Shown here: positions 1,861-64,000 of the stretch, piece by piece
Layout of the letters: the number at the start of each line of letters is the position of its first letter
Position numbering within the stretch: the stretch's first letter is position 1
IMG/VR virus record: IMGVR_UViG_3300035145_003993
Location: 124,001-188,000 of that record
Strand: one strand, 5' to 3'
Length of the DNA stretch: 64,000 nt
The notes under the pieces: generated by a model
Databases searched by the model: none
Told to the model about the DNA's origin: nothing
What the model saw: only the letters and a program-made list of their open reading frames with translations
Translations under genes and position numbers: made by a program

Positions 1861-2058
1861 TTAAGTTGAAATTTTTTTTAAATTGTCTTTTAAAACAACA
1901 TCAATTCCTCCTGACGGGAAAAGTACAAAATATCTTTTTTGATTATTAACTATGTTTTTCTCAATTACTAATCTCTTAAACTCTGAAATGACTATGACTG
2001 GGCTTCCTCTAAAACTATAAAGATTTCCTATTATATTAGAATTTTCTTTTGCTTCCAT
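1861..2058 (-). CDS. Small hypothetical protein, SH3/KOW-like
   Basis: ORF track; IIGNLYSFRGSPVIVISE beta-rich pattern. Confidence 0.55.
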   Translation of the reverse strand: MEAKENSNIIGNLYSFRGSPVIVISEFKRLVIEKNIVNNQKRYFVLFPSGGIDVVLKDNLKKIST

Positions 2059-3328
2059 GAATAACCTTTATTACTGGAAAACGTAAAGAAAATTCTCCTT
2101 TTTGATTTTTAGACTCTTCAAAATATTGTACTGTAATTGTTTTGTTTAAAATATCATTTGGATTTTCAAATAAATGTTTTCTTTGTTCTATAGAGAATCC
2201 GCTACCTACTCTAACTATATTTCCTTTATGTTCAATAGATACCCCACTTAACATTTCTTCTTCTACTTCGACTCCATTTTTAATATATCTTATAGGACCA
2301 AAGAAAATGTCTTTTACTATGTATTCATTATCATAAAACGTTTTTATTTTTAAAATATCATTAGTTCTTTTTCCTTTATAAGGAGTACTTTTTCTAAGCA
2401 TTAAACCTTCCCAACCTTTTTCTGAAGATTTTTGTGTTAGCTCATTAATTTCTTCAAAACTTGAAACAGGTATTTGATCTAGAAAGTTTATATAGTTTAA
2501 TTTTTTACCTAAAAGAAGATTTTGTAAAGCAAAAACCCTTTGAGAAAAAGTACCTGTTTCACCATATCCTTTCGAAAACATTCGATAAGGAATAAAATCA
2601 AAAATTTGAAATAGACCGTTTTGAATAGTGTGATCTTTTCTTCCTATTTCTTTCATAATGTTTTGAAAGTCTTCATCACCATTTTTATCTACAATACACA
2701 TTTCTCCGTCATAAACAATGTTTTTAACACCTAAGTTTTCTAATTCCTTTTCTACCAAGGATAACGTATGAAATTGTTTTCCTGATCTTGCAAATGATTT
2801 TGCTTTCCCTTTTTCGTCCACAATAATAAGACAGCGAACACCATCGAGTTTTCTTGATACATACCAAACATCTTTCTTTAAATCTACTTTCTTTTTTGTT
2901 TTATCATTAAATTTATTAGCTAATGCCACGTTAAACGTAGGAATTAATCCTATATGAGCTTTATTAATTAATTTAACAGAAGCTCTAATTTTAAGATTTC
3001 TATTAAGTATTAAGTAAAGTAGATTTTTAAATTCAGGATTTTTTAAAATAAATCCGTTTGTTTCTTCTATTGCTTTATGACCTGTAATTAATTTTTCATT
3101 TAAAGAGTCTAACAGATTAAATATAGAATCAAATTTAGTATCTTTATTGCATAGATCTTTCCTTTTTTCTAAGTTTTTAGAAGTAATGTTATATTGCATA
3201 AAATTATTATACGTATAATATAAAATTCTTTGTAACTCTCTATCACAGTTTCTTAAAACTTTAATTTTATCATTAGTTGAATTAGAAGAATTCATTTCTT
3301 TAATAAAATCGTTAAATTTATTAATCAT
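2036..3328 (-). CDS. lig: ATP-dependent DNA ligase
   Basis: KLDGVR motif I, YDGE, FQIFD, EGLMLR, LKIK and C-terminal LRFP OB-fold motifs. Confidence 0.93.
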   Translation of the reverse strand: MINKFNDFIKEMNSSNSTNDKIKVLRNCDRELQRILYYTYNNFMQYNITSKNLEKRKDLCNKDTKFDSIFNLLDSLNEKLITGHKAIEETNGFILKNPEFKNLLYLILNRNLKIRASVKLINKAHIGLIPTFNVALANKFNDKTKKKVDLKKDVWYVSRKLDGVRCLIIVDEKGKAKSFARSGKQFHTLSLVEKELENLGVKNIVYDGEMCIVDKNGDEDFQNIMKEIGRKDHTIQNGLFQIFDFIPYRMFSKGYGETGTFSQRVFALQNLLLGKKLNYINFLDQIPVSSFEEINELTQKSSEKGWEGLMLRKSTPYKGKRTNDILKIKTFYDNEYIVKDIFFGPIRYIKNGVEVEEEMLSGVSIEHKGNIVRVGSGFSIEQRKHLFENPNDILNKTITVQYFEESKNQKGEFSLRFPVIKVIHGSKRKF

Positions 3329-3955: not shown

Positions 3956-5227
3956 TTACATATTGATAACAATATCAGATTTATCATTATCAAAAGCTAG
4001 TTTGCAGTTTTTAGCTAATATCCAACATCTTCTCATTCTTTGTGAAGAAGGAGGTTTAGGTGCTCCTCCATCTGTTAGTATAATATAGCCATCGAATTTT
4101 TTTCTATTTTCTTGTGCATGTTTTGCAACAGCACTAAATGAAGTACCTCCTACCAAAGTTCTAGATATATTTGGTCTTTTGTTTTTCTTCCAGACAAATC
4201 CATTTTGATCATCTACCTTACTATCAAACTTGTATAAGAAAAAATCTGTTGACCTTGATAAATTATCTAATTCACTGTAGAATAAAGATAGTTCTTTATC
4301 ACTTACAGAACCACTTTCATCTATGTAAACTGCAATCATTGGTCTGTATATCTTTTTAGAACCGGGATGTATTCCGGGATATTTTCTATTTAATCTTCTT
4401 ATTGAAGATCTTCTTTCATCTTTTCTAGTAAATCCACAAAATCTTTTTAGTAAAGATTCCCAACTAATTTTAGAAGAAACAATCTTATAAATTTCAGATC
4501 TAGTTTCAGCTGGAATCGATCCCCAATTTCTTGATTCTGCTTCTTGTATTGCGTCTTTAATTAATTCTTTTAGTTTTCCTTTTAATAACTCTTTTTCTTC
4601 ATCAGACATATTATCCCATCCTTCATGATCATCGAAACCTATTTCAAATTTGTCTGATTCTTCTAAGAATTTTTTAATGTCTTTATTTTCCATTAATTTT
4701 TCAAAATAGTATTCTGAAGTTTTATTTCTTGGAAAACTTTCAATTAATGAAGATAGTTTTTCAAAATTATCTATTTCTTCTTGTGTTGCGTTTTTTCTTT
4801 GTGATTCATCTAAGAATAATTTTTTACCTGGAATTAGACCACCTTTTGGAAGTTCATGTTCAGGAATTGTAGAATTAATAGCTAAATCAGTTGAATAATT
4901 CCAGATTATATGAGGATCTTTTCTTCGGTCAGAAGTATGACCAAAAACTAAATGTAAACATTCATGTTTAAGTAATCCTGTTATTTCATGATTATTTAAG
5001 CCTGCTAGAAATTCTCTATTCCAATAAAGAGTTATATCATCATTTATACAAGTCACACCAGCTGTAGGTATTTGCGTTGTTTCTTCTTTATTTAATGACC
5101 TAAGAATTCTTGAGTAAAAAGGTTCATTCCAAAGAAAGTCAACAAGATGTTTTGTTAAATCAAATTTTTCAATTTCTAGTTCAGATACTTCGCGTTTTTT
5201 AAGAATGTTATTGTTATTTTTACTCAT
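3956..5227 (-). CDS. Metallopeptidase-like plus VWA-domain protein (MoxR partner)
   Basis: KHECLH HExxH motif; coiled-coil; IDESGS MIDAS, GGTSF, IILTDG. Confidence 0.85.
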   Translation of the reverse strand: MSKNNNNILKKREVSELEIEKFDLTKHLVDFLWNEPFYSRILRSLNKEETTQIPTAGVTCINDDITLYWNREFLAGLNNHEITGLLKHECLHLVFGHTSDRRKDPHIIWNYSTDLAINSTIPEHELPKGGLIPGKKLFLDESQRKNATQEEIDNFEKLSSLIESFPRNKTSEYYFEKLMENKDIKKFLEESDKFEIGFDDHEGWDNMSDEEKELLKGKLKELIKDAIQEAESRNWGSIPAETRSEIYKIVSSKISWESLLKRFCGFTRKDERRSSIRRLNRKYPGIHPGSKKIYRPMIAVYIDESGSVSDKELSLFYSELDNLSRSTDFFLYKFDSKVDDQNGFVWKKNKRPNISRTLVGGTSFSAVAKHAQENRKKFDGYIILTDGGAPKPPSSQRMRRCWILAKNCKLAFDNDKSDIVINM

Positions 5228-5237
5228 AATAATCCTC

Positions 5238-6320
5238 TTATTTGTTTAAAAGATTTCTGTTATTATTTACTATTTCAACAATATAGTTTCCAATTTCTTT
5301 GTGGAATTTTTGAATAGATTTAATATTCTTTCCTTTTGTTACACAAGACCAAAAATGAATCATCATCTCTTCAGAAATAATTTTTCCTAATTTTGCTGCA
5401 TTCTTAGCTTGAGATACTGTCCAATCATTAGTAGTAGAATGTTCACCTAATCTTTCAATTAAAGAGTTTATTCTATCATTAGACATTGCATCAATCTTTG
5501 GTTTACATTTATCGAAGCTTTTTAGCAATTCTTCGGGTGTTACAATAATTTCATATTTCTTAACAAAGTCAGTAAATTCAACTGCAGCTTCTTGACCAAT
5601 AAAACCAATTGATGTATTAAAAATATCAAATGTATCTTTATTAGATAAGAGATCAATATCATTATATTTTAAAACTTCGTCAAACCTTGCCCAAGAAGCT
5701 GGAGTTGGAAATACATTCCCAGGTTTAATTTTTTCTAAATTAACGTATAAATGAGAAGTTCTAGTTTTTAAAAATTCAATTATTAAATTATCTACATTTT
5801 TACTTTTTGCCCAATCAATCCAATCTTGTTTTGTTGGTTGTAAATCTATTGTCCAAAATCTTCTTAATAAAGCTGGATCCATTTCATTAACATCATATTC
5901 ATTACCATGATTAATAGCAGCAAATATTCTTGTTTCTGGGTGTATATCATAAGGGTTACCATTTTCATCATTTCCTAATTGTCTATCAAGAACAATTTGA
6001 AAGAAAGATTGTTGTACTGATGGTAATCCTCTATTAAATTCATCTAAGAATAATACAACTGGTTCATTACAAGCTCTTACAAACCAAGATGGCATGCAAA
6101 ATGTCATAATACCTTTTTCTTTCATTCCTTCAATATCAGGATAACCTTGAACATCACCTTCAGACATAATAGAAGCTCGAACATCTATTAAAGGTAGATT
6201 AATATCTTTAGATATTTGATTAACTAATGCTGATTTTCCTATGCCTGTACTTGCTCTCATAAGAACTGCATGGTGTGATGGTAGATTTTTAACAATTTTT
6301 AAAAAGCTTTTAATATTCAA
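5238..6320 (-). CDS. MoxR-like AAA+ ATPase
   Basis: Walker A ASTGIGKS, Walker B LFLDEFNR, AAIN, MDPALLRRF, PTPASW. Confidence 0.9.
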   Translation of the reverse strand: MNIKSFLKIVKNLPSHHAVLMRASTGIGKSALVNQISKDINLPLIDVRASIMSEGDVQGYPDIEGMKEKGIMTFCMPSWFVRACNEPVVLFLDEFNRGLPSVQQSFFQIVLDRQLGNDENGNPYDIHPETRIFAAINHGNEYDVNEMDPALLRRFWTIDLQPTKQDWIDWAKSKNVDNLIIEFLKTRTSHLYVNLEKIKPGNVFPTPASWARFDEVLKYNDIDLLSNKDTFDIFNTSIGFIGQEAAVEFTDFVKKYEIIVTPEELLKSFDKCKPKIDAMSNDRINSLIERLGEHSTTNDWTVSQAKNAAKLGKIISEEMMIHFWSCVTKGKNIKSIQKFHKEIGNYIVEIVNNNRNLLNK

Positions 6321-10990: not shown

Positions 10991-11187
10991 TTTTCCTCTT
11001 TCGTTATTTTTTCTAGAAAGTCTGTAGGGATTTGTACTATTTCTTTATTTAATAAGATTTTAGATAGCGTTTTGCTTTCTTGATAAGAAGAATTTTTTCC
11101 ATAAGATATAAAAATCCCAACATCACATCTACTGTTTGAAAACTTATTTGTATTAAGAACAAGATCACCTTTAGTTAAGATGCCCAA
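10987..11187 (-). CDS. Small SH3/KOW-like protein
   Basis: LTKGDLV...DVGIFISY; sits between purA and purB. Confidence 0.55.
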   Translation of the reverse strand: MGILTKGDLVLNTNKFSNSRCDVGIFISYGKNSSYQESKTLSKILLNKEIVQIPTDFLEKITKEEK

Positions 11188-12371
11188 ACTATTTCTCCTC
11201 TTTTAGGACCAGTTGTAAAAGATATACGTTTTACACCAGTGTGGATTTCTATTGTATTTAATAATTCTTTAAATCCAGGATCAGTTGTTTTAACGCTGTT
11301 AATTCTAGTCATCGAATAGTTTCTTCCGTGTAAGAAGAAAGCAGGTTTCTCTATATGTGTCATCACGTCTGTTTTAACAACACACAAATGATCTACTCCA
11401 TTTTGTATAATAGCTAATTTAACTTCGTCTAAATCTAACCAACCACACTGTCTAGGACGCCCAGTTGTCGCACCAAACTCTTGACCAACTTCAGCTAATA
11501 TCTTTTCTTGACCATCTGTAATGATACTAGGAAAATTACCGCTACCTACCTTAGTTTTGTAAGATTTAATTACTCCTATTACTTCATCGATTTGCTTATG
11601 ATTTAATCCTGTAGAGTTGATTGCTCCACCTACAGAAGGTGAAGATGATGTAACGTCTGGATAGTTATCTGAAAATATGTTAAGGCCACTTCCTTGTGCA
11701 CCTTCTAAAAGAATATTATAATCTTTTTTATAATATTCGTGAAGAACATTTTCGTCACTTAGTTGATACATTCGCAAGATTGAAACCATATTTTCATATT
11801 CAGAAATCCAAGAATTAAATAGATCAAAGTCAGGTTTTAAGTCTTCTAAACTTTCACCGTCTTGTGCTCTTCTTTCTTGTAAGTCATAAAACCTTGATTG
11901 AATTTTAATGAGAGACTGTTCAGGCATATTTACAAAATCTTTAACCAAAATAGAGTCCCGAGCGTAAAAATCAGAGTATGCAGGACCAATTCCTTTTGCA
12001 GTCGTGCCTAGTCTTTTCTGATATTTGAGTCGATCAATTATTTTATGAGTTGGCTCAATTATAGGACAATATCCCGAAACTGAAAGATTTGAACCAGGTT
12101 TTACATTTAAGTCTGTTACTTCTTTGCAAAAGTCTTCTACATCTATAACACATCCTCTTGAAATAATGTTAATAACTTCTTTTGTTAAAACACCTACAGG
12201 AAGAATGTGTGTAACAAACTTATTACCTTTTCTATCGTAAACTGTATGACCAGCATTCCCTCCTCCTTGAAACCTTACAACGACGTCAGCCCAAGTTTGA
12301 ACTAAATCATCAACTACTCTACCTTTACCTTCGTCTCCATGTTGAAGACCTAAAACTAATTTTACTGGCAT
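11175..12371 (-). CDS. purA: Adenylosuccinate synthetase (canonical PurA, not PurZ)
   Basis: QHGDEGKG, RFQGGGNAGHT, GTTAKGIGPAY, LEGAQG, EFGATTGRPRQCGWLD. Confidence 0.93.
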   Translation of the reverse strand: MPVKLVLGLQHGDEGKGRVVDDLVQTWADVVVRFQGGGNAGHTVYDRKGNKFVTHILPVGVLTKEVINIISRGCVIDVEDFCKEVTDLNVKPGSNLSVSGYCPIIEPTHKIIDRLKYQKRLGTTAKGIGPAYSDFYARDSILVKDFVNMPEQSLIKIQSRFYDLQERRAQDGESLEDLKPDFDLFNSWISEYENMVSILRMYQLSDENVLHEYYKKDYNILLEGAQGSGLNIFSDNYPDVTSSSPSVGGAINSTGLNHKQIDEVIGVIKSYKTKVGSGNFPSIITDGQEKILAEVGQEFGATTGRPRQCGWLDLDEVKLAIIQNGVDHLCVVKTDVMTHIEKPAFFLHGRNYSMTRINSVKTTDPGFKELLNTIEIHTGVKRISFTTGPKRGEIVWAS

Positions 12372-23896: not shown

Positions 23897-25528
23897 TTAA
23901 TACATATCATCTGATAGTTGAACTAATTGAACTCCTCCATGACCGTCATTACTATTTAAAACAATACACCCTACTGATATTAGACTATTACATACACTAA
24001 CTGCGTTTGATATTGCAGTTGCAGTAACTTTTTGTGGATCAATAATTCCTTCATCAATCATATCAACATACGATTCAGTACGAACATCATATCCATAATT
24101 CCAATCTCTATTGTTTTTTATCATTTCAATAATATAATCAACTGGTTTATCTCCATTTTGCAAAATCTTTTTCAATGGAGACATACATGCGTCAGAAACA
24201 ATTTTTGAAACAGTGCTATCTAGCAAGGATTCTTCTTTGCTTTCTTCTAAAAGATTTATTCCTGCTCTTGCCAAAGCAATCCCACCACCTGGCAAGAATC
24301 CACTTTCAATAGCAGCTTTCGTTGCATGAAGAGCATCATCGATTCTATCTACTAATTCTAATAACTCAGATTCTGTATGAGCTCCAATTGAAAGAACAGC
24401 AACAATACCTTTATTAATAATAAGCCTTTGTTTATAAAAGACTTCATCTTCCTTTGAAAGAGTTTTATCTTCTAATTTTTTCTCAACAGCCTTCGAAATT
24501 TCATCAGAGTTTTCACAAGAAGCACATTCAACAAAAAGAGTTGAATTATGATTTGTTTCGATCTTTTTAGAATTCCCTAAGTCTGAAAGGAGAACATTAG
24601 ACATTTCTCTTTCATCTAAATCATAGAAAACTTTTGTTCCTAAAGCTTTAGCGAGATCATTTAAAATTTGATTTCTTTTTTCACCATAAAATGGAGATCT
24701 AACTGCACAAACTTGCAAAGTACCTTTTGAAACATTAGCTAACAAAGATTGAATTACTTCTTGTTCATAGTCATTTGCAATAATAAATAAAGATTTTCCA
24801 GTTTGATGTATTTTTTCTAAAATCGGAAGAATTTGTGAAAGACTATTTAATTTACAACTTAGGATTAAAATTAAAGGATCATCTAAAACTGTTTTTGATT
24901 TTTCATTGTCATTAATAAAATAAGGTGAAACATATCCACGATCAATTTTAACACCACGAACTAATTTAAGCTCTGTATTTGTAGTTTTAGATTTTTCGAC
25001 TGTAACTAGTCCAGAAGAACCTACTTCTGACATTGCGTTAGCAATCAAGTTACCAATATATTCGTCACCGTTAGCACTAATTGTTGCAACTTGCCTTATT
25101 TCTTCATTAGAAGAAACTTTCTTTGATTTTTTAGATAATATTTCAACAACATCAGAAACCTTTTTATTTAAGTAAGAAGTGATTTCTGATGGTGATCCTA
25201 TTCCTGTTTGCAAAGCTTGAGATGCTCTAAAATATAATTCTTTAGCTAAAACAGTTGAAGTTGTACTTCCATCACCCGCTACAGTTGCTGTATTTTCGCT
25301 AGCTTGTTTTAAAAGTTTTGCGCCAAGATCTTCAACTCTATTTTGTAGAACAATACTTTTAGCTACTGTTGCACCATCTTTAGTTAAATGAGGAGGTTCG
25401 TTATTTTTTTCTATTAATACTAATTTACCTCTTGGTCCCATTGTGATTGAAACAGCATCACAAAGTTTTTTTACTCCACTTTTTAGATGATTTTGTGCTT
25501 CTTCATCAAAGTATATTAAGTCTGACAT
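23897..25528 (-). CDS. groEL: Chaperonin GroEL
   Basis: ITMGPRG, TKDGATVAK, AGDGSTT, RIDDALHATKAAIESGFLPGGG, GIIDP. Confidence 0.95.
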   Translation of the reverse strand: MSDLIYFDEEAQNHLKSGVKKLCDAVSITMGPRGKLVLIEKNNEPPHLTKDGATVAKSIVLQNRVEDLGAKLLKQASENTATVAGDGSTTSTVLAKELYFRASQALQTGIGSPSEITSYLNKKVSDVVEILSKKSKKVSSNEEIRQVATISANGDEYIGNLIANAMSEVGSSGLVTVEKSKTTNTELKLVRGVKIDRGYVSPYFINDNEKSKTVLDDPLILILSCKLNSLSQILPILEKIHQTGKSLFIIANDYEQEVIQSLLANVSKGTLQVCAVRSPFYGEKRNQILNDLAKALGTKVFYDLDEREMSNVLLSDLGNSKKIETNHNSTLFVECASCENSDEISKAVEKKLEDKTLSKEDEVFYKQRLIINKGIVAVLSIGAHTESELLELVDRIDDALHATKAAIESGFLPGGGIALARAGINLLEESKEESLLDSTVSKIVSDACMSPLKKILQNGDKPVDYIIEMIKNNRDWNYGYDVRTESYVDMIDEGIIDPQKVTATAISNAVSVCNSLISVGCIVLNSNDGHGGVQLVQLSDDMY

Positions 25529-43155: not shown

Positions 43156-43365
43156 ATGTACCAAATTTTAGAAAATTATATACAACTTGTATTTGAAAAC
43201 GAAAAAAATAAAAACAAAACGTTTAAAGATATACTTAATAGTTTAAAAAATAGTCAAAATCCTAAAAAGGTACTAAGAAATACAGATCCTATAGAAAGAA
43301 ATACAGATCAAATAGGATTTGACCAATTAATTAAAAAATCTAGTAATTCTAATCAAACGCGTTAA
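43156..43365 (+). CDS. Short leader-bearing ORF, possible remnant
   Basis: MYQILENYIQLVFENE; RBS present; overlaps the dnaE stop. Confidence 0.45.
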   Translation: MYQILENYIQLVFENEKNKNKTFKDILNSLKNSQNPKKVLRNTDPIERNTDQIGFDQLIKKSSNSNQTR

Positions 43366-46300
43366 TCTTTTTAAGCTTAGCTAAACTTGATGACATACCC
43401 CAGTTAACATCATTACTAATATCAGCCAACCAAGTTGTAAATTCAATTTCACCTTCCATATCTCCCCATACTCGAAGCCATCCACTTCGATTATCAATAT
43501 CGACGCATTTCCATCTCATAAATGATTTACCGTTTTTAGTTGTTTTTCTAATAACTTCTGTAACAGTAAACCATCCAATTCCACGCTCACCTTTTGGTAT
43601 ATCAAAAATACTATTGATTTGCTTCTGTTTTAGTTTTTTAACTAAGCTTGGTGGAAACAATAAATCGTCATTTGCATCATTACTGAGTTCAAAATAGTTT
43701 TTAATTTTAGTACTTCTTGACCAATCACTAACAACTCTGTATTGTGAGATTAACTTTTCGACAATTGGAATGATTTCTTCACCATTTTTATTTGCTTTTT
43801 TAATAGCAGTTTTTGTCATTCCAAAGCTTCCTTTCTTTAAAATCATATAATTATCCAAGATTAAATCATGCATTTGTTTGTGATTGTCTAGTGTTCCATC
43901 TTGAAATTCTTGGAGTGACTTAAATGCTTCCATCTTTGTTAGTGATGAAAAAGCTGTTTTATTCATTTTTGAATGTTTCCATTCTCCTTCTTTATTGTAA
44001 AAAAGATCTTGTAAATTATTATATGGTCTATTTACAAATATTTCTTCAACAGCTTTGTCACCTACTCCTTTAAGAGATGTCAACGGAGGAACAAACGATT
44101 TTAAATCTTCTGAATATTCCCATTGAGATCCTGAGTGATTTATATCAATTGCTGATATGTCATATCCTAGTGCCTTAATTTCTGCAATTACTTTGGACAT
44201 TCCTTTAGGATTACCATTTTCTGATTGTAAAACAGTTGCTAGCCAGTCTGTTTCGTAGTGTGTATGAAGCCACGCAGCGTAATATGAGTCGATTGCATAA
44301 GAAACAGCATGACTTTTATTGAAACCGTAAACAGCAAAACCTTCTATTTCTTCCCAAAGTTTTTTAGATATATGTTCGGGTACATCATTAATTTCTTTTG
44401 CACCTTTAATAAACTTTTCTCTTGCAATTGTTTTTTCATCTTTTTTATTTCCCATTGTTGCGAGATTATTCTTAACAAGGGTTTTTCTCAGCTTATCAGC
44501 TTCACCTGGATCAAAACCTGATAGTTTTTGTGCAAGTAACATAAATTGCTCTTGAAATACAACGTAAGAAAATGTTGGTCCTAAAACTTCTTCGATAATC
44601 GGATGATCGTATTTAATTTGTTCTGCGTTTTGTTTAGATTTAACATATTTTTTATGAACATTAGCTTTAAGAGGTCCAGGACGATAAATAGCAGTTAAAG
44701 CTGCTAATTCTTCAATACTTTCTGGTTTAGCTTCTAATGAAAAGTTTCTAGCTCCTGTATTTGTAAATTGGAATATTCCTACAAATCTTCCATCATGATA
44801 TACATGCTTCCAGACATCTTGATCATTTTGTTCGTGAAATCTACAATTTAAATGTTTATCAAAGAATTTTTTAGCATCACTAAATTGTGGATTATTATTA
44901 CCCTCCTTTTTAAGGATTCTATAAATACAATTTTCAATATCTTTTAATAAGGATAAACCTAAGAAATCAAATTTAATAAAACCATTATCTTCTAAGTTTC
45001 TAAAATTTAATCCTTCTGACCATGGTGTTTGTAATTCTCCTCTTACACCTACGATAGGCATAGTTGTTTCTAAATGTTCAGGATCAGCTACTAACACACC
45101 CCCTGCATGACGACCAATTGCTCTATTCTGCATAAACAAAGAAGCAATATGAGTTTCAACTTCAGGATATCTTTCCATAAAATCTTTATATTCTGGAGAA
45201 TACTTTTTACAATCTTCATGCTTAAGAACAAAAACAGATTTTTCTTGATCGTCACCTTTTGCCATTTTCATAACTTGATCGTGAAGAGGACCAGTTACTT
45301 TATTTACTTCATCATACGGAATATCATAAAACTTAGATATATCTTTAATAAGAGACTTAAGCTTTAAAGTATTAAAGTTAGAAACAGGAATAACAGCATC
45401 GTTTCCATATAATTCTTTTGCAGCATTAATTAACTCATCACGATCACCAGCATCTGTATCAATATCAGGCCATGAAACCCTATGCCTTCCTAAGAATCTT
45501 GCCCAAAGAAGATCGTATGGAAGAGGGTCAACTTGTGTAATGCCTAATAAATAATTAACTAAAGAGCCAGCTCCTGATCCTCTTCCTGGCCCTAATAAAG
45601 TTTTCTTTTCAGCCTTCTTAAAAATTTCATACATCGTAATAAAATATGCTTCGTGACCAAGATACTTTATATCTGATAATTCTTCTTTAGCACGATCAAC
45701 ATAAACTTGGTTTGTATGAAAACCATGGCTAACGAGTGAATCTTTAACTAAAGAAGATAAGTGTTGAAAAGGAGTTTTATTTGGAACGTTTATTGTAGGT
45801 AGTTTAACTCCTGTATCAATCCAAGTATCTTCAAATTCATTCCAAACGATATCATGAGTTCGATTAATAGCATCACGAACTAATTCTTCATTACCTTTAT
45901 AAAATTCATAAGTAGGATATGAATCAAGAAATTCTTCCCACATTTGAGAAGCATTTTTTGGATATAATTCACACTTAAGATCTTCAAATTCTGGAAGAGA
46001 AAGATTATCTCTTTTTCCTAACCAACCAAGTTTTTTATATAATTCTCGAGCTTGCCATTTTTCATTTGAAGGGTAATGTGAATCTGCTGTACAAATAAGA
46101 GGAATACCTGTTAATTTATGGTGTTCTATAAGATAATCATTAACAGTATGCTGTTTTTCTAATTTATTAAACTGTAATTCAAGTTTAAAATTGTTTTCTC
46201 CAACACAAGAAACAAACCTATCTGTTAGATTTAATAATTCTTTCTGAATTTGTTCACGTGATTGATTATGAACTTCACCTCTTAAAATACGATTACTATA

Positions 46301-46444
46301 AATACCACCAAGGCAGTTGTGCACTAAAATATTGTTAGCAAAAAAATTGTGATTACCTTCAACAGTAATGTCGTAAACGTCAGAAGTCTCATCTATTTCT
46401 TCAATAATTTCAACTTCAATAAATTTTGTTTGAATGTCTTTCAA
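43349..46444 (-). CDS. dnaE: DNA polymerase III alpha, C-terminal part, preceded by a C-intein
   Basis: IntC ending VHN|C; GPGRGSGAGS, PDIDTD, GRHAGG, KFDFLG, YGFNKSHA. Confidence 0.95.
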   Translation of the reverse strand: MKDIQTKFIEVEIIEEIDETSDVYDITVEGNHNFFANNILVHNCLGGIYSNRILRGEVHNQSREQIQKELLNLTDRFVSCVGENNFKLELQFNKLEKQHTVNDYLIEHHKLTGIPLICTADSHYPSNEKWQARELYKKLGWLGKRDNLSLPEFEDLKCELYPKNASQMWEEFLDSYPTYEFYKGNEELVRDAINRTHDIVWNEFEDTWIDTGVKLPTINVPNKTPFQHLSSLVKDSLVSHGFHTNQVYVDRAKEELSDIKYLGHEAYFITMYEIFKKAEKKTLLGPGRGSGAGSLVNYLLGITQVDPLPYDLLWARFLGRHRVSWPDIDTDAGDRDELINAAKELYGNDAVIPVSNFNTLKLKSLIKDISKFYDIPYDEVNKVTGPLHDQVMKMAKGDDQEKSVFVLKHEDCKKYSPEYKDFMERYPEVETHIASLFMQNRAIGRHAGGVLVADPEHLETTMPIVGVRGELQTPWSEGLNFRNLEDNGFIKFDFLGLSLLKDIENCIYRILKKEGNNNPQFSDAKKFFDKHLNCRFHEQNDQDVWKHVYHDGRFVGIFQFTNTGARNFSLEAKPESIEELAALTAIYRPGPLKANVHKKYVKSKQNAEQIKYDHPIIEEVLGPTFSYVVFQEQFMLLAQKLSGFDPGEADKLRKTLVKNNLATMGNKKDEKTIAREKFIKGAKEINDVPEHISKKLWEEIEGFAVYGFNKSHAVSYAIDSYYAAWLHTHYETDWLATVLQSENGNPKGMSKVIAEIKALGYDISAIDINHSGSQWEYSEDLKSFVPPLTSLKGVGDKAVEEIFVNRPYNNLQDLFYNKEGEWKHSKMNKTAFSSLTKMEAFKSLQEFQDGTLDNHKQMHDLILDNYMILKKGSFGMTKTAIKKANKNGEEIIPIVEKLISQYRVVSDWSRSTKIKNYFELSNDANDDLLFPPSLVKKLKQKQINSIFDIPKGERGIGWFTVTEVIRKTTKNGKSFMRWKCVDIDNRSGWLRVWGDMEGEIEFTTWLADISNDVNWGMSSSLAKLKKINAFD
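46316..46444 (-). mobile_element. Split intein C-fragment (43 aa) of DnaE
   Basis: VYDITVEGNHNFFANNILVHN followed by Cys+1. Confidence 0.93.
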
Positions 46445-46463: not shown

Positions 46464-46492
46464 AATATAATACAATTAGTTAATATTTACAC
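46464..46492 (-). promoter_or_regulatory. Phage promoter GTGTAAA-N16-TATATT for the dnaE C-fragment
   Basis: -35 lies in the last codons of the endonuclease gene. Confidence 0.65.
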
Positions 46493-47426
46493 TTTCATTA
46501 ATTAAATCAATTGTATTATCAATTTCATTTTCCCATATAATCAAGTAGTTATAGTTTCTTTTTTTTGCTATCTTCATTTTGTAAGAATCAGCATTCCAAA
46601 TATCACCTGCTTTTATTTTTCCTCTTGGGAAATCAAGAATGCTATTTTCATTATATAGAGAAGGGTGTGCGTGCCAAAATAGACCATGGCATTCAATGAT
46701 TAAATTAAACTTTGGCAGATAAAAATCATATATGTAACATCTTTTGTTGTATAATAATTCATCTTTTGTCAAATTAATTCGATATTGAATAGAATAGTCA
46801 ATGTTATTTTCTCTTAATAATCTTTCAATTCTTTTTTCTGTTTTAGGTTGTGATGTTTTTTTAAGAGCACCAATTGCACCTTTAACAGCTCTTTCTGAAA
46901 TTATTGCATTTGCATTATCCTTACTTAATCCTTTCTTAAGCCAAAACTCAATGCAAAATGGAGAATTTGATCGTTTATAGTTAGATAAACTTTCTTTTGC
47001 ATCTTCAATATTTTCCGTTTTTTCTATCCAATACTCTAAAGTTTGTTTTTGGTTGTAAGGTTTACCTGACTTTTTTCTAGTTTTAACTGTTCCTTTTTGT
47101 CCTTTTAAAGAAGTCTTCAAATAGTAACTTTCAATTTCTTTTATTGAAGTGTTTTTTGGAAATTTAAACTGACTTCTGAATGCTGTTGAAGTTTTTTGAT
47201 TATCTACATGAAGCTTAAAACCGATTTTGTCTTTTAAAAGAATAGAAAAAGTTTGCTGTGATATATTTAACTCATTAAAGCATTTTCTATTGTCACGATT
47301 AATCATTTGATATAACATTGAAAACGAGTAAAGTTTATTAATAAAACCTTGTATTTCTTCTTTTGAGTAATAAGAAAAAAGTATTTCTTCTCTAATTTTC
47401 CATATATTTGTTTTTTTTGTTTTCAT
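46476..47426 (-). mobile_element. Free-standing Vsr-like homing endonuclease between the dnaE halves
   Basis: C-terminal YDFYLPKFNLIIECHGLFWH...IIWE; repeated EYWIEK/EFWLKKG segments. Confidence 0.85.
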
Positions 47427-47463
47427 TATATTATCCTCCTAGGCACATATTATATATTCTGCT

Positions 47464-48381
47464 TCAGAGGTTAATATTAATAATTATATCACCTTTAACA
47501 ATATCTTTTGTATCAATCCATCCTTTGTCTTTAACAAGAACACGATGATCAGGTGTAAGTTTGATTTCGTTACCTTCTTTGTCTTTAATTCTCATAAGCT
47601 TAGCACCTCCTCGGGTTTTGTCACCCCAGATTACTTTTTTAAATTCAGCTTTGCTAGTATATTCATTATAAGAAAGAACTTGGATTTCTTCACCTTTATT
47701 AAATCTTTCTACAACTTCTTTAATAGATAGATTTCCAGATGAAGTTTGTAAAGTTGTGTCAGGATGAAGACAAGCTGTAGATATGTGTAATCCTTCACCA
47801 TGTTCTTGAAGCATTTGAAAATCAATACGTGGGTATCTATAAAAACCATATTTATACGATTTTTTAACTAAAGTAAATAAATTGTGAAGACCTTTTTGGT
47901 TTTTTGCTGTAACTACCAAATGATATCTTCTTTTCCACTCATCTTTAAGGATATCAACATTTTTTGTTTCATCTTCGTCTTCAACAACTAATCCGCCACT
48001 TTCATCATCTGCGTCAATATCAACTTTTTCTTTTGATTTCCTTTCAGCAGCAGCGGCAGATTTTGCGTCTTTTACTGCTTGTTTGTGAGCAGCATATTCT
48101 TCAGACCATTGTTGAAGTGAAGGAACAAAATAAAATTCAACTCCATAAATTTGTCTATAATTCCTTCCTGATTTTTGCATTCTAATTGTATGAGATCTTG
48201 CATGAGCAAGACCATTACCGTTACCATGGTCTGTTAGTGCCCATGCATCCATACCCTGAGATTCAGACAAAACAAAATCAATATGATCAGATGGGTATCC
48301 TAATCCATCGAATGTTGAAAACGTGCTGTGTGCATGAAGACCGACAAATCTATCTGGTGGTGTTATTAAATCAATAGACAA
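47464..48381 (-). CDS. dnaE: DNA polymerase III alpha, N-terminal PHP domain plus N-intein
   Basis: LHAHSTFSTFDG, ALTDHG, IYGVEFY, YHLVV, ISTA|CLHPDT. Confidence 0.95.
   Translation of the reverse strand: MSIDLITPPDRFVGLHAHSTFSTFDGLGYPSDHIDFVLSESQGMDAWALTDHGNGNGLAHARSHTIRMQKSGRNYRQIYGVEFYFVPSLQQWSEEYAAHKQAVKDAKSAAAAERKSKEKVDIDADDESGGLVVEDEDETKNVDILKDEWKRRYHLVVTAKNQKGLHNLFTLVKKSYKYGFYRYPRIDFQMLQEHGEGLHISTACLHPDTTLQTSSGNLSIKEVVERFNKGEEIQVLSYNEYTSKAEFKKVIWGDKTRGGAKLMRIKDKEGNEIKLTPDHRVLVKDKGWIDTKDIVKGDIIININL
47467..47772 (-). mobile_element. Split intein N-fragment (102 aa) of DnaE
   Basis: Block A CLHPDT, block B LTPDHRVL, GW...GD. Confidence 0.93.
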
Positions 48382-60959: not shown

Positions 60960-61565
60960 TTATTCTAAATCAAAACTTACAGAAACTTTTCCTTTTAATC
61001 GTGGTATTCTTAATTGCTGGACTATATTGTGTTCTTTTGCCTCTTCAGCTTCTAAAAACCAATCTGCGTGACCTTTGTCATGAATTAAGTTTAAGAAATA
61101 ATCATCCGGCTTTCCACAATTTCGTGCCATCATAGTATATAATTTTTTATTTAATCGTTCAGACTCGCGTGCATCAGCTTTAAGTTCTTCAACTTTACCA
61201 AAAGCCATTGAAGAAACATCATGAATCATTAGTACAGAATCTTTGTCCATAAATCGTAAACCTTCGTCACCAAAAGAAGCTAATAAAGCTCCACATGACA
61301 TTGCTTTTCCTTTAACAATAGTTGCTACAGGAATTGTTGATGATTTAATTGTAGCTATCATTGATAATAGTGAATAAGCTTGACCTCCAAATGAATCAAT
61401 AACAATAGGTATAATTTTTTGCCCAGTATTTTGAGCAGCACTAACGAGAGTTGAAAATTCGCTAGCAGACTCTTCAGTAAATTCATTTACAGTTATAACT
61501 ACAGGATCGTTTCTTAGCTCAAGATCCTTGATTAGTGGAGATATCTCAGCAACAAAATTAATCAT
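60960..61565 (-). CDS. clpP: ClpP-family protease
   Basis: IDSFGG, AMSCG (catalytic Ser), LMIHD, DWFLEAEEA. Confidence 0.88.
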   Translation of the reverse strand: MINFVAEISPLIKDLELRNDPVVITVNEFTEESASEFSTLVSAAQNTGQKIIPIVIDSFGGQAYSLLSMIATIKSSTIPVATIVKGKAMSCGALLASFGDEGLRFMDKDSVLMIHDVSSMAFGKVEELKADARESERLNKKLYTMMARNCGKPDDYFLNLIHDKGHADWFLEAEEAKEHNIVQQLRIPRLKGKVSVSFDLE

Positions 61566-61809
61566 TTAACATTCCTCTCAAAGAATCAATTGTCATTAAT
61601 CCAACTTTTCTTGACACTTCTTTGTCATCAACTACCTTAATAAATGTAGGAACATTCATAACATGATATTTACATGACTTAACAGTATCTTCAGATATAT
61701 CAATAATCTCAATTGATAATTCGTTTTTAATATTTTCTGTTAGTCTATTTTTCATTTGCTTACACGGCCCACACCAAGGAGCACTAAAAAATAAAATTTT
61801 TGTATTCAT
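61558..61809 (-). CDS. trxA: Thioredoxin
   Basis: WCGPC, VPTF. Confidence 0.92.
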   Translation of the reverse strand: MNTKILFFSAPWCGPCKQMKNRLTENIKNELSIEIIDISEDTVKSCKYHVMNVPTFIKVVDDKEVSRKVGLMTIDSLRGMLND

Positions 61810-61866: not shown

Positions 61867-62832
61867 TTAAGCTATATTTTCCCAACCCCAACTGTCACCA
61901 CTCATACCATCAGCATTATAGTCTGTAACAGTTCCTTCGAAGAAGTTTTTAAAACTGTCACCATTAATAATCCAGTCTAACCAATCTAGCGGATTATGTT
62001 TGACTTTAAAATTAGGCTTTAAACCTAACTGAATTAAGCGACGGTCTGCAAGATATCTGATGTATTGCTTAACCTCTTCTTTGTCTAATCCTTCAATATG
62101 ACCCATTTCATAAGCTAAATCAATAACTTTGTCTTCTAATTTTACAGCTTGACGATACATTTTATAAATTGATTTTTTAAATTCGTCATTTACAATTCGT
62201 GGATGTTCTTTTACAAACTCTCTAAATAGATGAGTCATGCCTTGAACGTGCATCGTCTCGTCGCGGATAGACCATTCAACGATTTCACACATTCCTTTCA
62301 TTTTTCCAAACCTTTGGTAATTTAATAACATTACAAATGCTGAAAATAGACTCATTCCTTCATTACACGCAGACTGCGCAAGAGCTAGTCCTAGTCCTTT
62401 TTTAGTACTTACATCGTTTTGTTGCATGAACTCAATTTTATCACTCATTTCTTTATATTCAAGAAACGCGCCATATTCTTCTTCAGACAATCCTAGTGTA
62501 TCGTTCAAGAGAGCATAGCTTCTTTGATGTGTGCCTTCACGATTTGCAAAACTTAATAGCATACTCCTAATTTCATTATTTTTAAACTTAGGAATAAACA
62601 GATCACAATAATTACCACCTACTTGCACATCACTTTGTGTAAATAGTCTAAGAATTTGTGTAATATGGTTTTTTTCTTCTAAAGATATTTTTCCACCTTT
62701 CCACTGATTGACATCTTCAGCTAACTTTGCTTCCCAACTTCCCCAGTGAATCTTTTCATGACTTTCTGCGATTTCCATTGCCCAAGCATACTTGAAGGGC
62801 TTATATGTTGTATTGTATTTTAGTAATGACAT
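61867..62832 (-). CDS. nrdB: Ribonucleotide reductase class Ia beta subunit
   Basis: FTQSD, EGTHQRSY, EGMSLFSAF, DETMH, YIRYLADRRL. Confidence 0.95.
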   Translation of the reverse strand: MSLLKYNTTYKPFKYAWAMEIAESHEKIHWGSWEAKLAEDVNQWKGGKISLEEKNHITQILRLFTQSDVQVGGNYCDLFIPKFKNNEIRSMLLSFANREGTHQRSYALLNDTLGLSEEEYGAFLEYKEMSDKIEFMQQNDVSTKKGLGLALAQSACNEGMSLFSAFVMLLNYQRFGKMKGMCEIVEWSIRDETMHVQGMTHLFREFVKEHPRIVNDEFKKSIYKMYRQAVKLEDKVIDLAYEMGHIEGLDKEEVKQYIRYLADRRLIQLGLKPNFKVKHNPLDWLDWIINGDSFKNFFEGTVTDYNADGMSGDSWGWENIA

Positions 62833-62865: not shown

Positions 62866-63927
62866 TTATCCTTGACAGCTTAAACATTCATCAGGATCAG
62901 CGAAATCTTGTAACTTATCTTGCTTAACCTTCTGACTAACCTTTTCAGCTGAAGCTCCTGCGTTTGTCCTTAGATAATATAATCCTTTTAACTTCTTTTT
63001 CCAAGCTCTAATATGTACTGCATTAACATAAGATTTATCAGTACCAGCGGGAAAGAATAAATTAACACTTTGACCTTGGCAAATAAATTCTTGTCTATCA
63101 CCTGCGTGATCTATAATCCATCTTTGATCTAATTCAAATGCTGTTTTAAATACTTCTTTATGCCAATCTGACATGTATTCAAGGTGTTGAACAGATCCTT
63201 CTGCTAAGATAATAGATTTCCATTGTTCATTCATCCAAGATTCAATATCAATTTTTTCTACATTGTCAGCATACTCTCTTAAAACTTTTTCTAAGTGATG
63301 ATTTTTCACTAAATAAGAACCTACTCTTGTTCTATGTGTATATGCATTACTTTTCCAAGGTTCAATAGATGGTGAAGTCCCTGCAATAATAGAAGAATTA
63401 GCATTTGGAGCAATTGCTAATAGATGAGAATTCCTAACTCCGTAACCAGATCCATCAGGACATTCACCTTTTTTAATCGCCAACTCTTTTGTACGCTGTT
63501 TTGCTTTTTCTTTAATTAATGAGAATATATTAATATTTGTTGCTTTTGCAATCCCTGATTCAAACGGAATATTTTTTGATTGAAGATAGGAGTGAAATCC
63601 CATTGCACCTAAACCAAGTGATCTTTCTCTCATAGCGGAAAATTTTGCTTTGTGCAAATAGTCAGGAGCATTTTCAATAAAAAATTGTAGGACGTTATCT
63701 AAATACTCTATTAAATCTTCAACAATATTTGTGTCTTTCCATTCATCAAACTTTTCAACATTTAGTGAGCTTAAACAACATACTGCACTTCTTTCAGGAG
63801 ATGTTGCCAAATGGATCTCATTACAATTGTGAACGAGCATGTTATTTGCAAAAAAATTTTTATTGTCTTTAACAGTTATGTCAAAAACAGGTTCTTTTGT
63901 TTCTCTTTTAATTATTTTTAATCCCAT
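62866..63927 (-). CDS. nrdA: Ribonucleotide reductase alpha subunit, C-terminal part, preceded by a C-intein
   Basis: VHN|CNEI, VCCLSSLN, RSLGLG, AIAPNANSS, ICQGQS, GLYYLR, C-terminal CxxC. Confidence 0.93.
   Translation of the reverse strand: MGLKIIKRETKEPVFDITVKDNKNFFANNMLVHNCNEIHLATSPERSAVCCLSSLNVEKFDEWKDTNIVEDLIEYLDNVLQFFIENAPDYLHKAKFSAMRERSLGLGAMGFHSYLQSKNIPFESGIAKATNINIFSLIKEKAKQRTKELAIKKGECPDGSGYGVRNSHLLAIAPNANSSIIAGTSPSIEPWKSNAYTHRTRVGSYLVKNHHLEKVLREYADNVEKIDIESWMNEQWKSIILAEGSVQHLEYMSDWHKEVFKTAFELDQRWIIDHAGDRQEFICQGQSVNLFFPAGTDKSYVNAVHIRAWKKKLKGLYYLRTNAGASAEKVSQKVKQDKLQDFADPDECLSCQG
63826..63927 (-). mobile_element. Split intein C-fragment (34 aa) of NrdA
   Basis: VFDITVKDNKNFFANNMLVHN|C, with its own ATG after an upstream in-window stop. 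Confidence 0.88.
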
Positions 63928-63940
63928 ATTTTCTACCTTT

Positions 63941-64000
63941 TATCCATTCTTCACTGTTAAGTGCATCGATTTCTTTTTTGCTCATTTGTTTTGAAACTTT
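63941..64000 (-). CDS. 3' end of an upstream ORF (endonuclease or NrdA-N/IntN), truncated by the window
   Basis: ...KVSKQMSKKEIDALNSENG*. Confidence 0.5.

Follow-up and report, generated by a model that had tools for sequence, protein, structure and literature searches.

The nrdA gene of an uncultured aquatic phage, which specifies the large subunit of ribonucleotide reductase (RNR), is very probably a fractured gene: a mobile cassette made of a split intein and a free-standing GIY-YIG endonuclease gene has broken it in two, and trans-splicing would restore a single NrdA protein. The DnaE polymerase gene on the same molecule appears to have been invaded independently, and the two intein pairs probably do not cross-react. 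I put the probability of this reading as a whole at about 0.88. The DNA considered here (the window) is the stretch of 64,000 nucleotides at positions 124001-188000 of the 211,364-bp linear IMG/VR virus record IMGVR_UViG_3300035145_003993, for which CheckV gives a completeness of about 84%. The adjoining 13 kb were also analysed, as L003 (G000:C1:186800-200000; L003 position = window position - 62799). Features of both regions are collected in Table 1.

All parts of the nrdA locus lie on the minus strand, in the order N-extein fused to the N-terminal intein half (NrdA-N::IntN), GIY-YIG open reading frame (ORF), C-terminal intein half fused to C-extein (IntC::NrdA-C), and then nrdB and the gene of a thioredoxin-like protein, likely the reductant of the RNR. 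A sequence-only reading of the end of the window had proposed that nrdA carries a second split intein in a genome that already has one in DnaE, having correctly recognized the C-terminal part with its own ATG and a 34-aa IntC that ends NFFANNMLVHN before the Cys. The DNA just past the end of the window, to which that reading had pointed, supplies what it lacked, IntN and an endonuclease, and the second split intein is genuine. IntN runs CLTGDT...TPDH...ELVFS to a TAA stop and is a polypeptide separate from IntC, whose ATG sits 797 nt downstream of the end of IntN. It matches Pfam Intein_splicing at 36.4 bits (cut-off 35.8) and the NrdJ-1 intein 8ubs in the PDB at 9.6e-17. Residues 5-34 of IntC match positions 125-155 of the same Pfam domain (27.5 bits for the half-domain alone), and its blocks F and G end ...FDITVKDNKNFFANNMLVHN followed by C, that is, His-Asn and then the +1 nucleophile Cys. 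All the splicing residues are kept: Cys1 in block A, CTPDH (the TPDH of block B), DITV...HN in blocks F and G, and Cys+1. The Pfam domains Ribonuc_red_lgN and Ribonuc_red_lgC, which correspond to the all-alpha and barrel domains of the RNR, are spread across the two NrdA halves; among solved structures, the class Id alpha chains 6dqw and 6dqx match best.

The gene between the halves begins with TTG, 7 nt after AAGGAG, and its final 20 nt overlap the start of IntC. Its product has the layout of an N-terminal catalytic domain and a C-terminal DNA-binding region: residues 2-89 match Pfam GIY-YIG (35.7 bits, 1.1e-08; cut-off 22.6 bits), and residues 1-228 match the homing endonuclease family phrog_314 (1.1e-25).

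The point at which the gene is broken is the active site itself. On the class Id RNR 6dqw the N-extein reaches as far as Leu285, and the residue opposite Cys+1 is Cys286 (residues 284-574 of 6dqw align to the C-extein); in Thermotoga maritima NrdJ (1xje) the residue opposite Cys+1 is number 322. The identification of Cys+1 as the thiyl-radical cysteine, already made from the CNEI motif, is therefore borne out by alignment, and it agrees with Dassa et al. (2009, PMC2677866), who place the break of fractured NrdA genes "directly N-terminal to the ... thiyl radical active site". Splicing at the junction SNL/CNEI would rebuild the loop S-N-L-C-N-E-I, which holds the N-x-C-x-E active-site motif; since the junction falls inside that loop, the intein leaves the catalytic Asn on one side and the Glu and radical Cys on the other. 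These three residues correspond to N437, C439 and E441 of the Escherichia coli enzyme.

To judge how the locus varies, I surveyed the 80 nrdA loci in IMG/VR closest to this one, together with the loci of 39 relatives of DnaE. In about 60 of the 80 there is no intein, and the two NrdA exteins abut in frame at SNL/CNEI. The same cassette is intact in L010-L015, L033 and L034 (L009 ends within the endonuclease), and also in the complete 239.5-kb genome G002, where DnaE is intein-less. Altogether the layout is found in at least 10 independent IMG/VR contigs. Other loci hold altered forms: the GIY-YIG gene has an internal deletion in L008 (3485-3830) and is 5'-truncated, without its catalytic N-terminus, in L035 (2860-3100), and both keep the intein halves despite the decayed endonuclease. 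L041 (1616-2065) has a contiguous mini-intein of 150 aa, homologous to the split one, with no stop and no endonuclease, and L080 (4763-5719), L083 and L084 have a 319-aa LAGLIDADG intein at the same site. To judge by these sequences, the relatives present all the stages of the gene-breaking model of Dassa et al. at one site, in a nearly complete series. A metatranscriptome contig carries an allele about 96% identical from which IntC, endonuclease and IntN are missing precisely (joint from L003 1026 to 2248). At DnaE only 2 of the 39 relatives are fractured at this site, and five other contigs that cover both loci have neither cassette.

Where the nrdA cassette is shared, it is more alike than the gene around it. 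Its IntN, spacer, endonuclease and IntC are 88-92% identical at the nucleotide level where the flanking exteins are 73-79% identical; for the DnaE cassette the figures are 93-98% and 77-79%. The rate of synonymous substitution (dS) is 0.33-0.62 in the cassette and 1.2-1.7 in the NrdA exteins, about 3-fold lower, and the ratio of nonsynonymous to synonymous rates (dN/dS) is 0.05-0.15 for IntN, endonuclease and IntC (0.09-0.15 for IntC, 0.14-0.15 for the endonuclease), compared with 0.07-0.10 for the exteins. Because dS is lower and nucleotide identity higher than in the exteins, and dN/dS is low, each cassette appears to be younger than its host gene, to move as a unit and to have had all its parts kept functional, a pattern that is the expected signature of homing. 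The nrdA cassette reads as a functional, mobile selfish element.

The arrangement has close published counterparts. Dassa et al. (2009, PMC2677866) described 26 fractured loci from metagenomes, including seven of NrdA and three of DnaE, in which the halves of a split intein flank a free-standing gene for a GIY-YIG or Vsr-like endonuclease; those at DnaE have Vsr-like endonucleases, and hairpins were noted upstream of the fracturing endonuclease genes. Both loci here have this layout. With the NrdA-1 to NrdA-7 loci of the Global Ocean Sampling metagenome, and NrdA-2 in particular, the present nrdA shares the host protein, the insertion point SNL/CNE, the split point, the lengths of the halves (106 aa and 33/34 aa), the endonuclease gene between them, and the combination of acidic IntN and basic IntC. 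By a hand count against NrdA-2 as Pinto et al. (2020, PMC7090010) print it in their supplement, IntN is identical at 92 of 106 residues and IntC at 30 of 33. The intein is thus a new allele of NrdA-2, a split intein already validated by experiment. NrdA-2 cis-splices with an efficiency of 75-98%, trans-splices at its natural split site with an optimum of 21-30 °C, and among 12 inteins tested in vitro gave a signal only with its own partner, so that it is orthogonal to the 11 others (PMC7090010). The present case differs in the roughly 9-13% amino-acid divergence of its allele, in its source (called "cyanophage-like" for NrdA-2, a guess from short reads, but here a phage of about 211-240 kb that uses a DnaE polymerase) and in having a second fractured gene on the same molecule.

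Other systems share some of these traits. Aeromonas phage Aeh1 (Friedrich et al. 2007; Crona et al. 2011, PMC3045599) likewise has an nrdA that is cut in two by mobE, a gene for a free-standing homing endonuclease, with both halves in one operon, but its NrdA has no intein and assembles non-covalently, whereas here the intein halves would restore the peptide bond. Contiguous RNR inteins, as in phiCbK-like Caulobacter phages and in L080, L083 and L084, occupy the same site before the radical cysteine, which is the most frequent intein site of RNRs (PMC2677866); they differ in being single-chain and cis-splicing, mostly with an embedded endonuclease domain, and in not being split by a free-standing gene. 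The cyanobacterial split DnaE inteins (Ssp, Npu) also belong to class 1, are split in nature, have both Cys1 and Cys+1, and assemble under electrostatic steering. Their halves, however, come from distant loci without an endonuclease gene and sit at another DnaE site, and they cross-react with each other, whereas the two pairs considered here are distant and charge-reversed.

How far the two pairs of this genome are related bears on whether they could be confused. A scan of the whole record with the Pfam intein domains found four half-inteins and no more, two belonging to NrdA and two to DnaE. The sequence-only reading was struck by their nearly identical C-terminal block, and it gave the end of DnaE IntC, NFFANNILVHN before Cys, correctly: 10 of 11 residues are the same as in NrdA IntC. 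The resemblance is real, but the block is a conserved motif of the family, present in the unrelated DnaB mini-intein 4o1r (VFDLTVPGLHNFVANNIIVHN) and in the published NrdA-2, which likewise ends NFFANNILVHN. Overall the IntN halves are 36% identical, and the IntC halves agree at 20 of 33 residues, mostly in blocks F and G. The shared block is thus the family-wide HINT block F/G and indicates no special relationship of the two inteins.

In the segments from which the strands between the fragments are formed, the charges of the two pairs are opposite. In the NrdA pair IntN is the acidic partner (net charge -12; a -5 patch lies at EVLEIIDEETG) and the N-terminus of IntC is basic (+2), while in the DnaE pair IntN has a +5 patch (KTRGGAKLMRIK) and the N-terminus of IntC is strongly acidic (-6, FIEVEIIEEIDETSD). 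The same two classes of charge polarity were described by Dassa et al. (2009, PMC2677866). Between split inteins of different lineages orthogonality is the usual outcome, as for 15 of 16 tested by Pinto et al. (2020, PMC7090010), and charge engineering has been used to bring it about, with mixed success. Because the interface charge is reversed, because NrdA-2 is orthogonal to 11 other inteins and because this is how separate lineages usually behave, the NrdA and DnaE pairs are likely to be orthogonal, as they would have to be if chimeras are to be avoided.

Table 1. Features of the nrdA and DnaE loci. Positions are those of the window unless marked L003 or G000; all features are on the minus strand.
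Feature	Position	Strand	Remarks
IntC::NrdA-C ORF	62866-63927	-	353 aa, ATG start; MGLKIIKRETKEPVFDITVKDNKNFFANNMLVHN then CNEIHL...; RNR barrel domain
NrdA C-extein	62866..63825	-	319 aa + stop; starts with Cys+1 in CNEI; Pfam Ribonuc_red_lgC 1.3e-58
IntC of NrdA (MGLKIIKRETKEPVFDITVKDNKNFFANNMLVHN)	63826..63927	-	34 aa, own ATG; blocks F and G; terminal His-Asn
GIY-YIG homing endonuclease gene (putative)	L003 1109-1867; 3' end = window 63908..64000	-	252 aa; extends past window end
NrdA N-extein (282 aa) + IntN (106 aa)	L003 1926-3092 = G000:C1:188725-189891	-	388-aa ORF, outside window
nrdB (RNR small subunit)	61867..62832	-	directly downstream of nrdA-C; phrog_86 7.7e-81
Thioredoxin-like protein	61558..61809	-	CGPC motif; phrog_22 thioredoxin domain 5.2e-10
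DnaE N-extein (203 aa, PHP domain) + IntN (102 aa, CLHPDT...ININL)	47464..48381	-	Pfam PHP 9.2e-20, Intein_splicing 2.2e-10
Free-standing Vsr-like putative homing endonuclease	46476..47426	-	316 aa; between DnaE halves
RNA hairpin	47405..47485	-	3' arm holds AGGAGG ribosome-binding site of Vsr-like endonuclease gene
DnaE IntC (43 aa, TTG start, 46316-46444) + DnaE C-extein (988 aa)	43349..46444	-	Pfam Intein_splicing 2.3e-09

The sequence of events that I favor is as follows. Once both precursors are translated, IntN, which is acidic, and IntC, through its basic N-terminus, would associate into a HINT fold, and trans-splicing would join Leu282 to Cys+1 and so close the active-site loop. The product would be a class Id-like NrdA of about 601 aa that works with the adjacent NrdB and thioredoxin. 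Cys+1 would serve first as a splicing nucleophile and then as the thiyl-radical cysteine, and because of this double duty the unspliced halves would be unable to make an active enzyme. That this allele trans-splices in vivo is suggested by NrdA-2, 87-91% identical, for which splicing has been shown in the literature. The GIY-YIG endonuclease most likely cuts the intein-less nrdA alleles of co-infecting relatives, and IntN, endonuclease and IntC would then be copied in together as one mobile cassette. DnaE would have been invaded separately by a different cassette, with a distant split intein and a Vsr-like endonuclease, and since the interface charges are reversed the two pairs would probably not cross-react.

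Several results weigh against this account or fail to lend it help. The activity and the target of the endonuclease are assigned by analogy only. The RNA fold upstream of the GIY-YIG gene has a z of +0.86, which is not significant; sigma-70-like sites at the nrdA locus are no commoner than in shuffled sequences; and the T4-type late promoter TATAAATA does not occur at the locus and shows no enrichment. When one metatranscriptome was compared with the locus, depth over IntC, endonuclease and IntN was zero, only an intein-less relative being present. As to orthogonality, published work has found that reversing the charges of the beta3/beta6 strands is not always sufficient, and a predicted complex of four chains, both IntN with both IntC, scored 0.14 against a mark of 0.34, which is evidence neither way. 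One sigma-70-like site lies within the coding region of IntN at L003 2183-2212 (minus strand), about 320 nt upstream of the endonuclease start, and matches at 11 of 12 positions (TTGACA, a spacer of 18 nt, TATCAT); because such sites are not above chance in the region, I do not treat it as a promoter.

Other explanations of the broken gene can be set against these facts. That a contiguous intein or an intact gene was broken by an error of sequencing or assembly, a thought that the record's being a single metagenome-assembled contig might encourage, is scarcely credible. What lies upstream of IntC is not the remainder of an intein but a complete endonuclease ORF of 252 aa, under purifying selection, and then NrdA-N::IntN with its own stop; at least 10 independent contigs share the layout, as does a complete genome that has terminal repeats; and contigs from the metagenomes of two other studies match without a mismatch across the 5' end of the endonuclease, IntN and the N-extein junction. 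The example of Aeh1, whose NrdA stays functional as two polypeptides although an endonuclease gene splits it (Dassa et al. 2009, PMC2677866), raises the thought that the halves here also assemble non-covalently and function unspliced, the intein halves acting only as docking modules. I consider this very unlikely, given that every splicing residue is conserved, that the intein halves are under strong purifying selection and that the nearly identical NrdA-2 splices efficiently; in addition, an unexcised intein of about 140 aa inside the N-x-C-x-E loop would probably block the active site.

A further proposal, that the fractured nrdA is dead or dying, the host RNR supplying deoxynucleotides and the cassette being a pure parasite of a dispensable auxiliary gene, gains something from the decayed endonucleases of many relatives. 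Phage RNRs are, moreover, usually auxiliary to the host enzyme and often dispensable, as mutants of T4 nrd genes illustrate. It nonetheless deserves very little credence: both exteins are full length, collinear with solved RNRs and at the low dN/dS given above, the genes of NrdB and thioredoxin are still there downstream, and L008 and L035 have conserved intein halves although their endonuclease has decayed, as is expected only if splicing is still needed. The auxiliary role of phage RNRs does limit another claim of the sequence-only reading, that two essential enzymes depend on trans-splicing at once. The record has no other gene for an RNR large subunit than the fractured nrdA, and DnaE is the only large polymerase of replicative type found in it, but because of that role "essential" is too strong a word for NrdA.

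The same reading supposed that splicing might gate replication. In its fuller form, the trans-splicing of NrdA and DnaE would have been co-opted as a redox, temperature or concentration switch that times phage DNA synthesis. Both targets do act in DNA synthesis, the chemistry of Cys1 and Cys+1 responds to redox state, the second gene downstream encodes a thioredoxin, and the splicing of NrdA-2 in vitro depends strongly on temperature. I find nothing in the sequence that is specific to regulation, however, and the insertion into an active site is also explained by the conservation of endonuclease targets and the difficulty of imprecise loss. The distribution of the cassettes also speaks against it, since they occur sporadically in close relatives and bear the marks of recent horizontal spread: there are the five genomes with neither, the complete genome with the nrdA cassette only, and the few DnaE loci that are fractured. 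Gating is accordingly improbable, and because of this sporadic distribution and recent spread I would argue that the cassettes are selfish elements, tolerated as they splice well, rather than a regulatory device.

The DnaE locus repeats the architecture with different parts. Its Vsr-like ORF matches Pfam Vsr weakly (16.4 bits, under the 27-bit cut-off) and PHROG families of homing or HNH endonucleases at 1e-7 to 1e-17 (phrog_22677, 1.9e-17), and its size and position agree with the description of DnaE-2 by Dassa et al. The hairpin at this locus has a minimum free energy of -15.3 kcal/mol (z -4.24; none of 200 shuffles was as stable) and pairs AGGAGG with the last part of the IntN reading frame; no comparable structure is seen at the GIY-YIG gene. 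IntC has the ribosome-binding site AAGGA before its TTG and ends NFFANNILVHN/CLGG, and the C-extein contains Pfam DNA_pol3_alpha (4.3e-52) with finger and HHH_6 domains. The nearest counterparts of the locus are the fractured loci DnaE-1 to DnaE-3 (Dassa et al. 2009), along with the I-Bth0305I-type endonuclease family (PMC3239194); the likeness would lie in the split intein, the putatively Vsr-like ORF of about 316 aa and the hairpin that sequesters the ribosome-binding site of the endonuclease. The insertion point, in the PHP domain, differs from that of the cyanobacterial DnaE split inteins. In several relatives (L089, L099, L113, L114, L115) the match to the C-extein breaks off near residue 279 and gives way to intein-like sequence, and the DnaE of G001 shows as many as four Hint hits (G001:C1:21781-22803); the DnaE of this phage lineage thus has at least one further insertion site, empty in the present genome.

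No family B polymerase was found in the record, and besides DnaE there is just a PolA-like ORF of 349 aa (L003 9239-10288, minus strand = G000:C1:196038-197087; Pfam DNA_pol_A 44.6 bits), and for that reason DnaE is likely the phage replicase. In the phage collection neither DnaE nor the RecA-like recombinase has a cultured relative above about 30-39% identity; the NrdA extein is best matched among cultured phages by the intein-less protein of Methylophilales phage Melnitz, at 65%. The lineage is common in marine, estuarine and wetland metagenomes, and the complete relative G002 measures 239,550 bp with terminal repeats. The window has no detected tRNA genes. It encodes a GroEL-type chaperonin (23897-25528, minus strand; phrog_5725, 3e-132) and an adenylosuccinate synthetase (11175-12371, minus strand). 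The PHROGs name of the latter family is PurZ-like, but a role in a 2-aminoadenine genome was rejected, canonical PurA matching at about 1e-62 and the PurA-like phage enzyme at 2e-18, and the gene looks like an ordinary auxiliary PurA. A third fractured gene, at DNA ligase (2036-3328), was also considered and rejected: the ligase is complete, and its neighbor, for which PHROGs suggested an HNH endonuclease, a label without Pfam support, is in fact a DUF2201 metallopeptidase/VWA protein. At 3956-6320 (minus strand) this protein adjoins an AAA_5 (MoxR-like) ATPase.

The arrangement, the insertion site and the intein lineage are already published, and in biotechnological use, so that the finding mainly confirms known biology. 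What becomes newly visible is the full genomic context of a fractured gene of the NrdA-2 type, in an uncultured lineage of aquatic phages of about 211-240 kb with a DnaE-type polymerase. To this are added every proposed stage of gene breaking at a single site and quantitative evidence for joint movement and purifying selection. The presence of fractured NrdA and DnaE genes with charge-reversed pairs on one molecule, a ready-made natural test of orthogonality, is the only other new point, and a modest one. I would suggest, tentatively and as something that may well prove otherwise, that this genome is a natural case of two split-intein pairs with mirror-image electrostatics that have to function next to each other in the same cytoplasm. 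If co-resident split inteins of phages should turn out to be systematically opposite in polarity, co-residence would itself select for orthogonality or filter it, and phage genomes would be a source of naturally validated orthogonal pairs.

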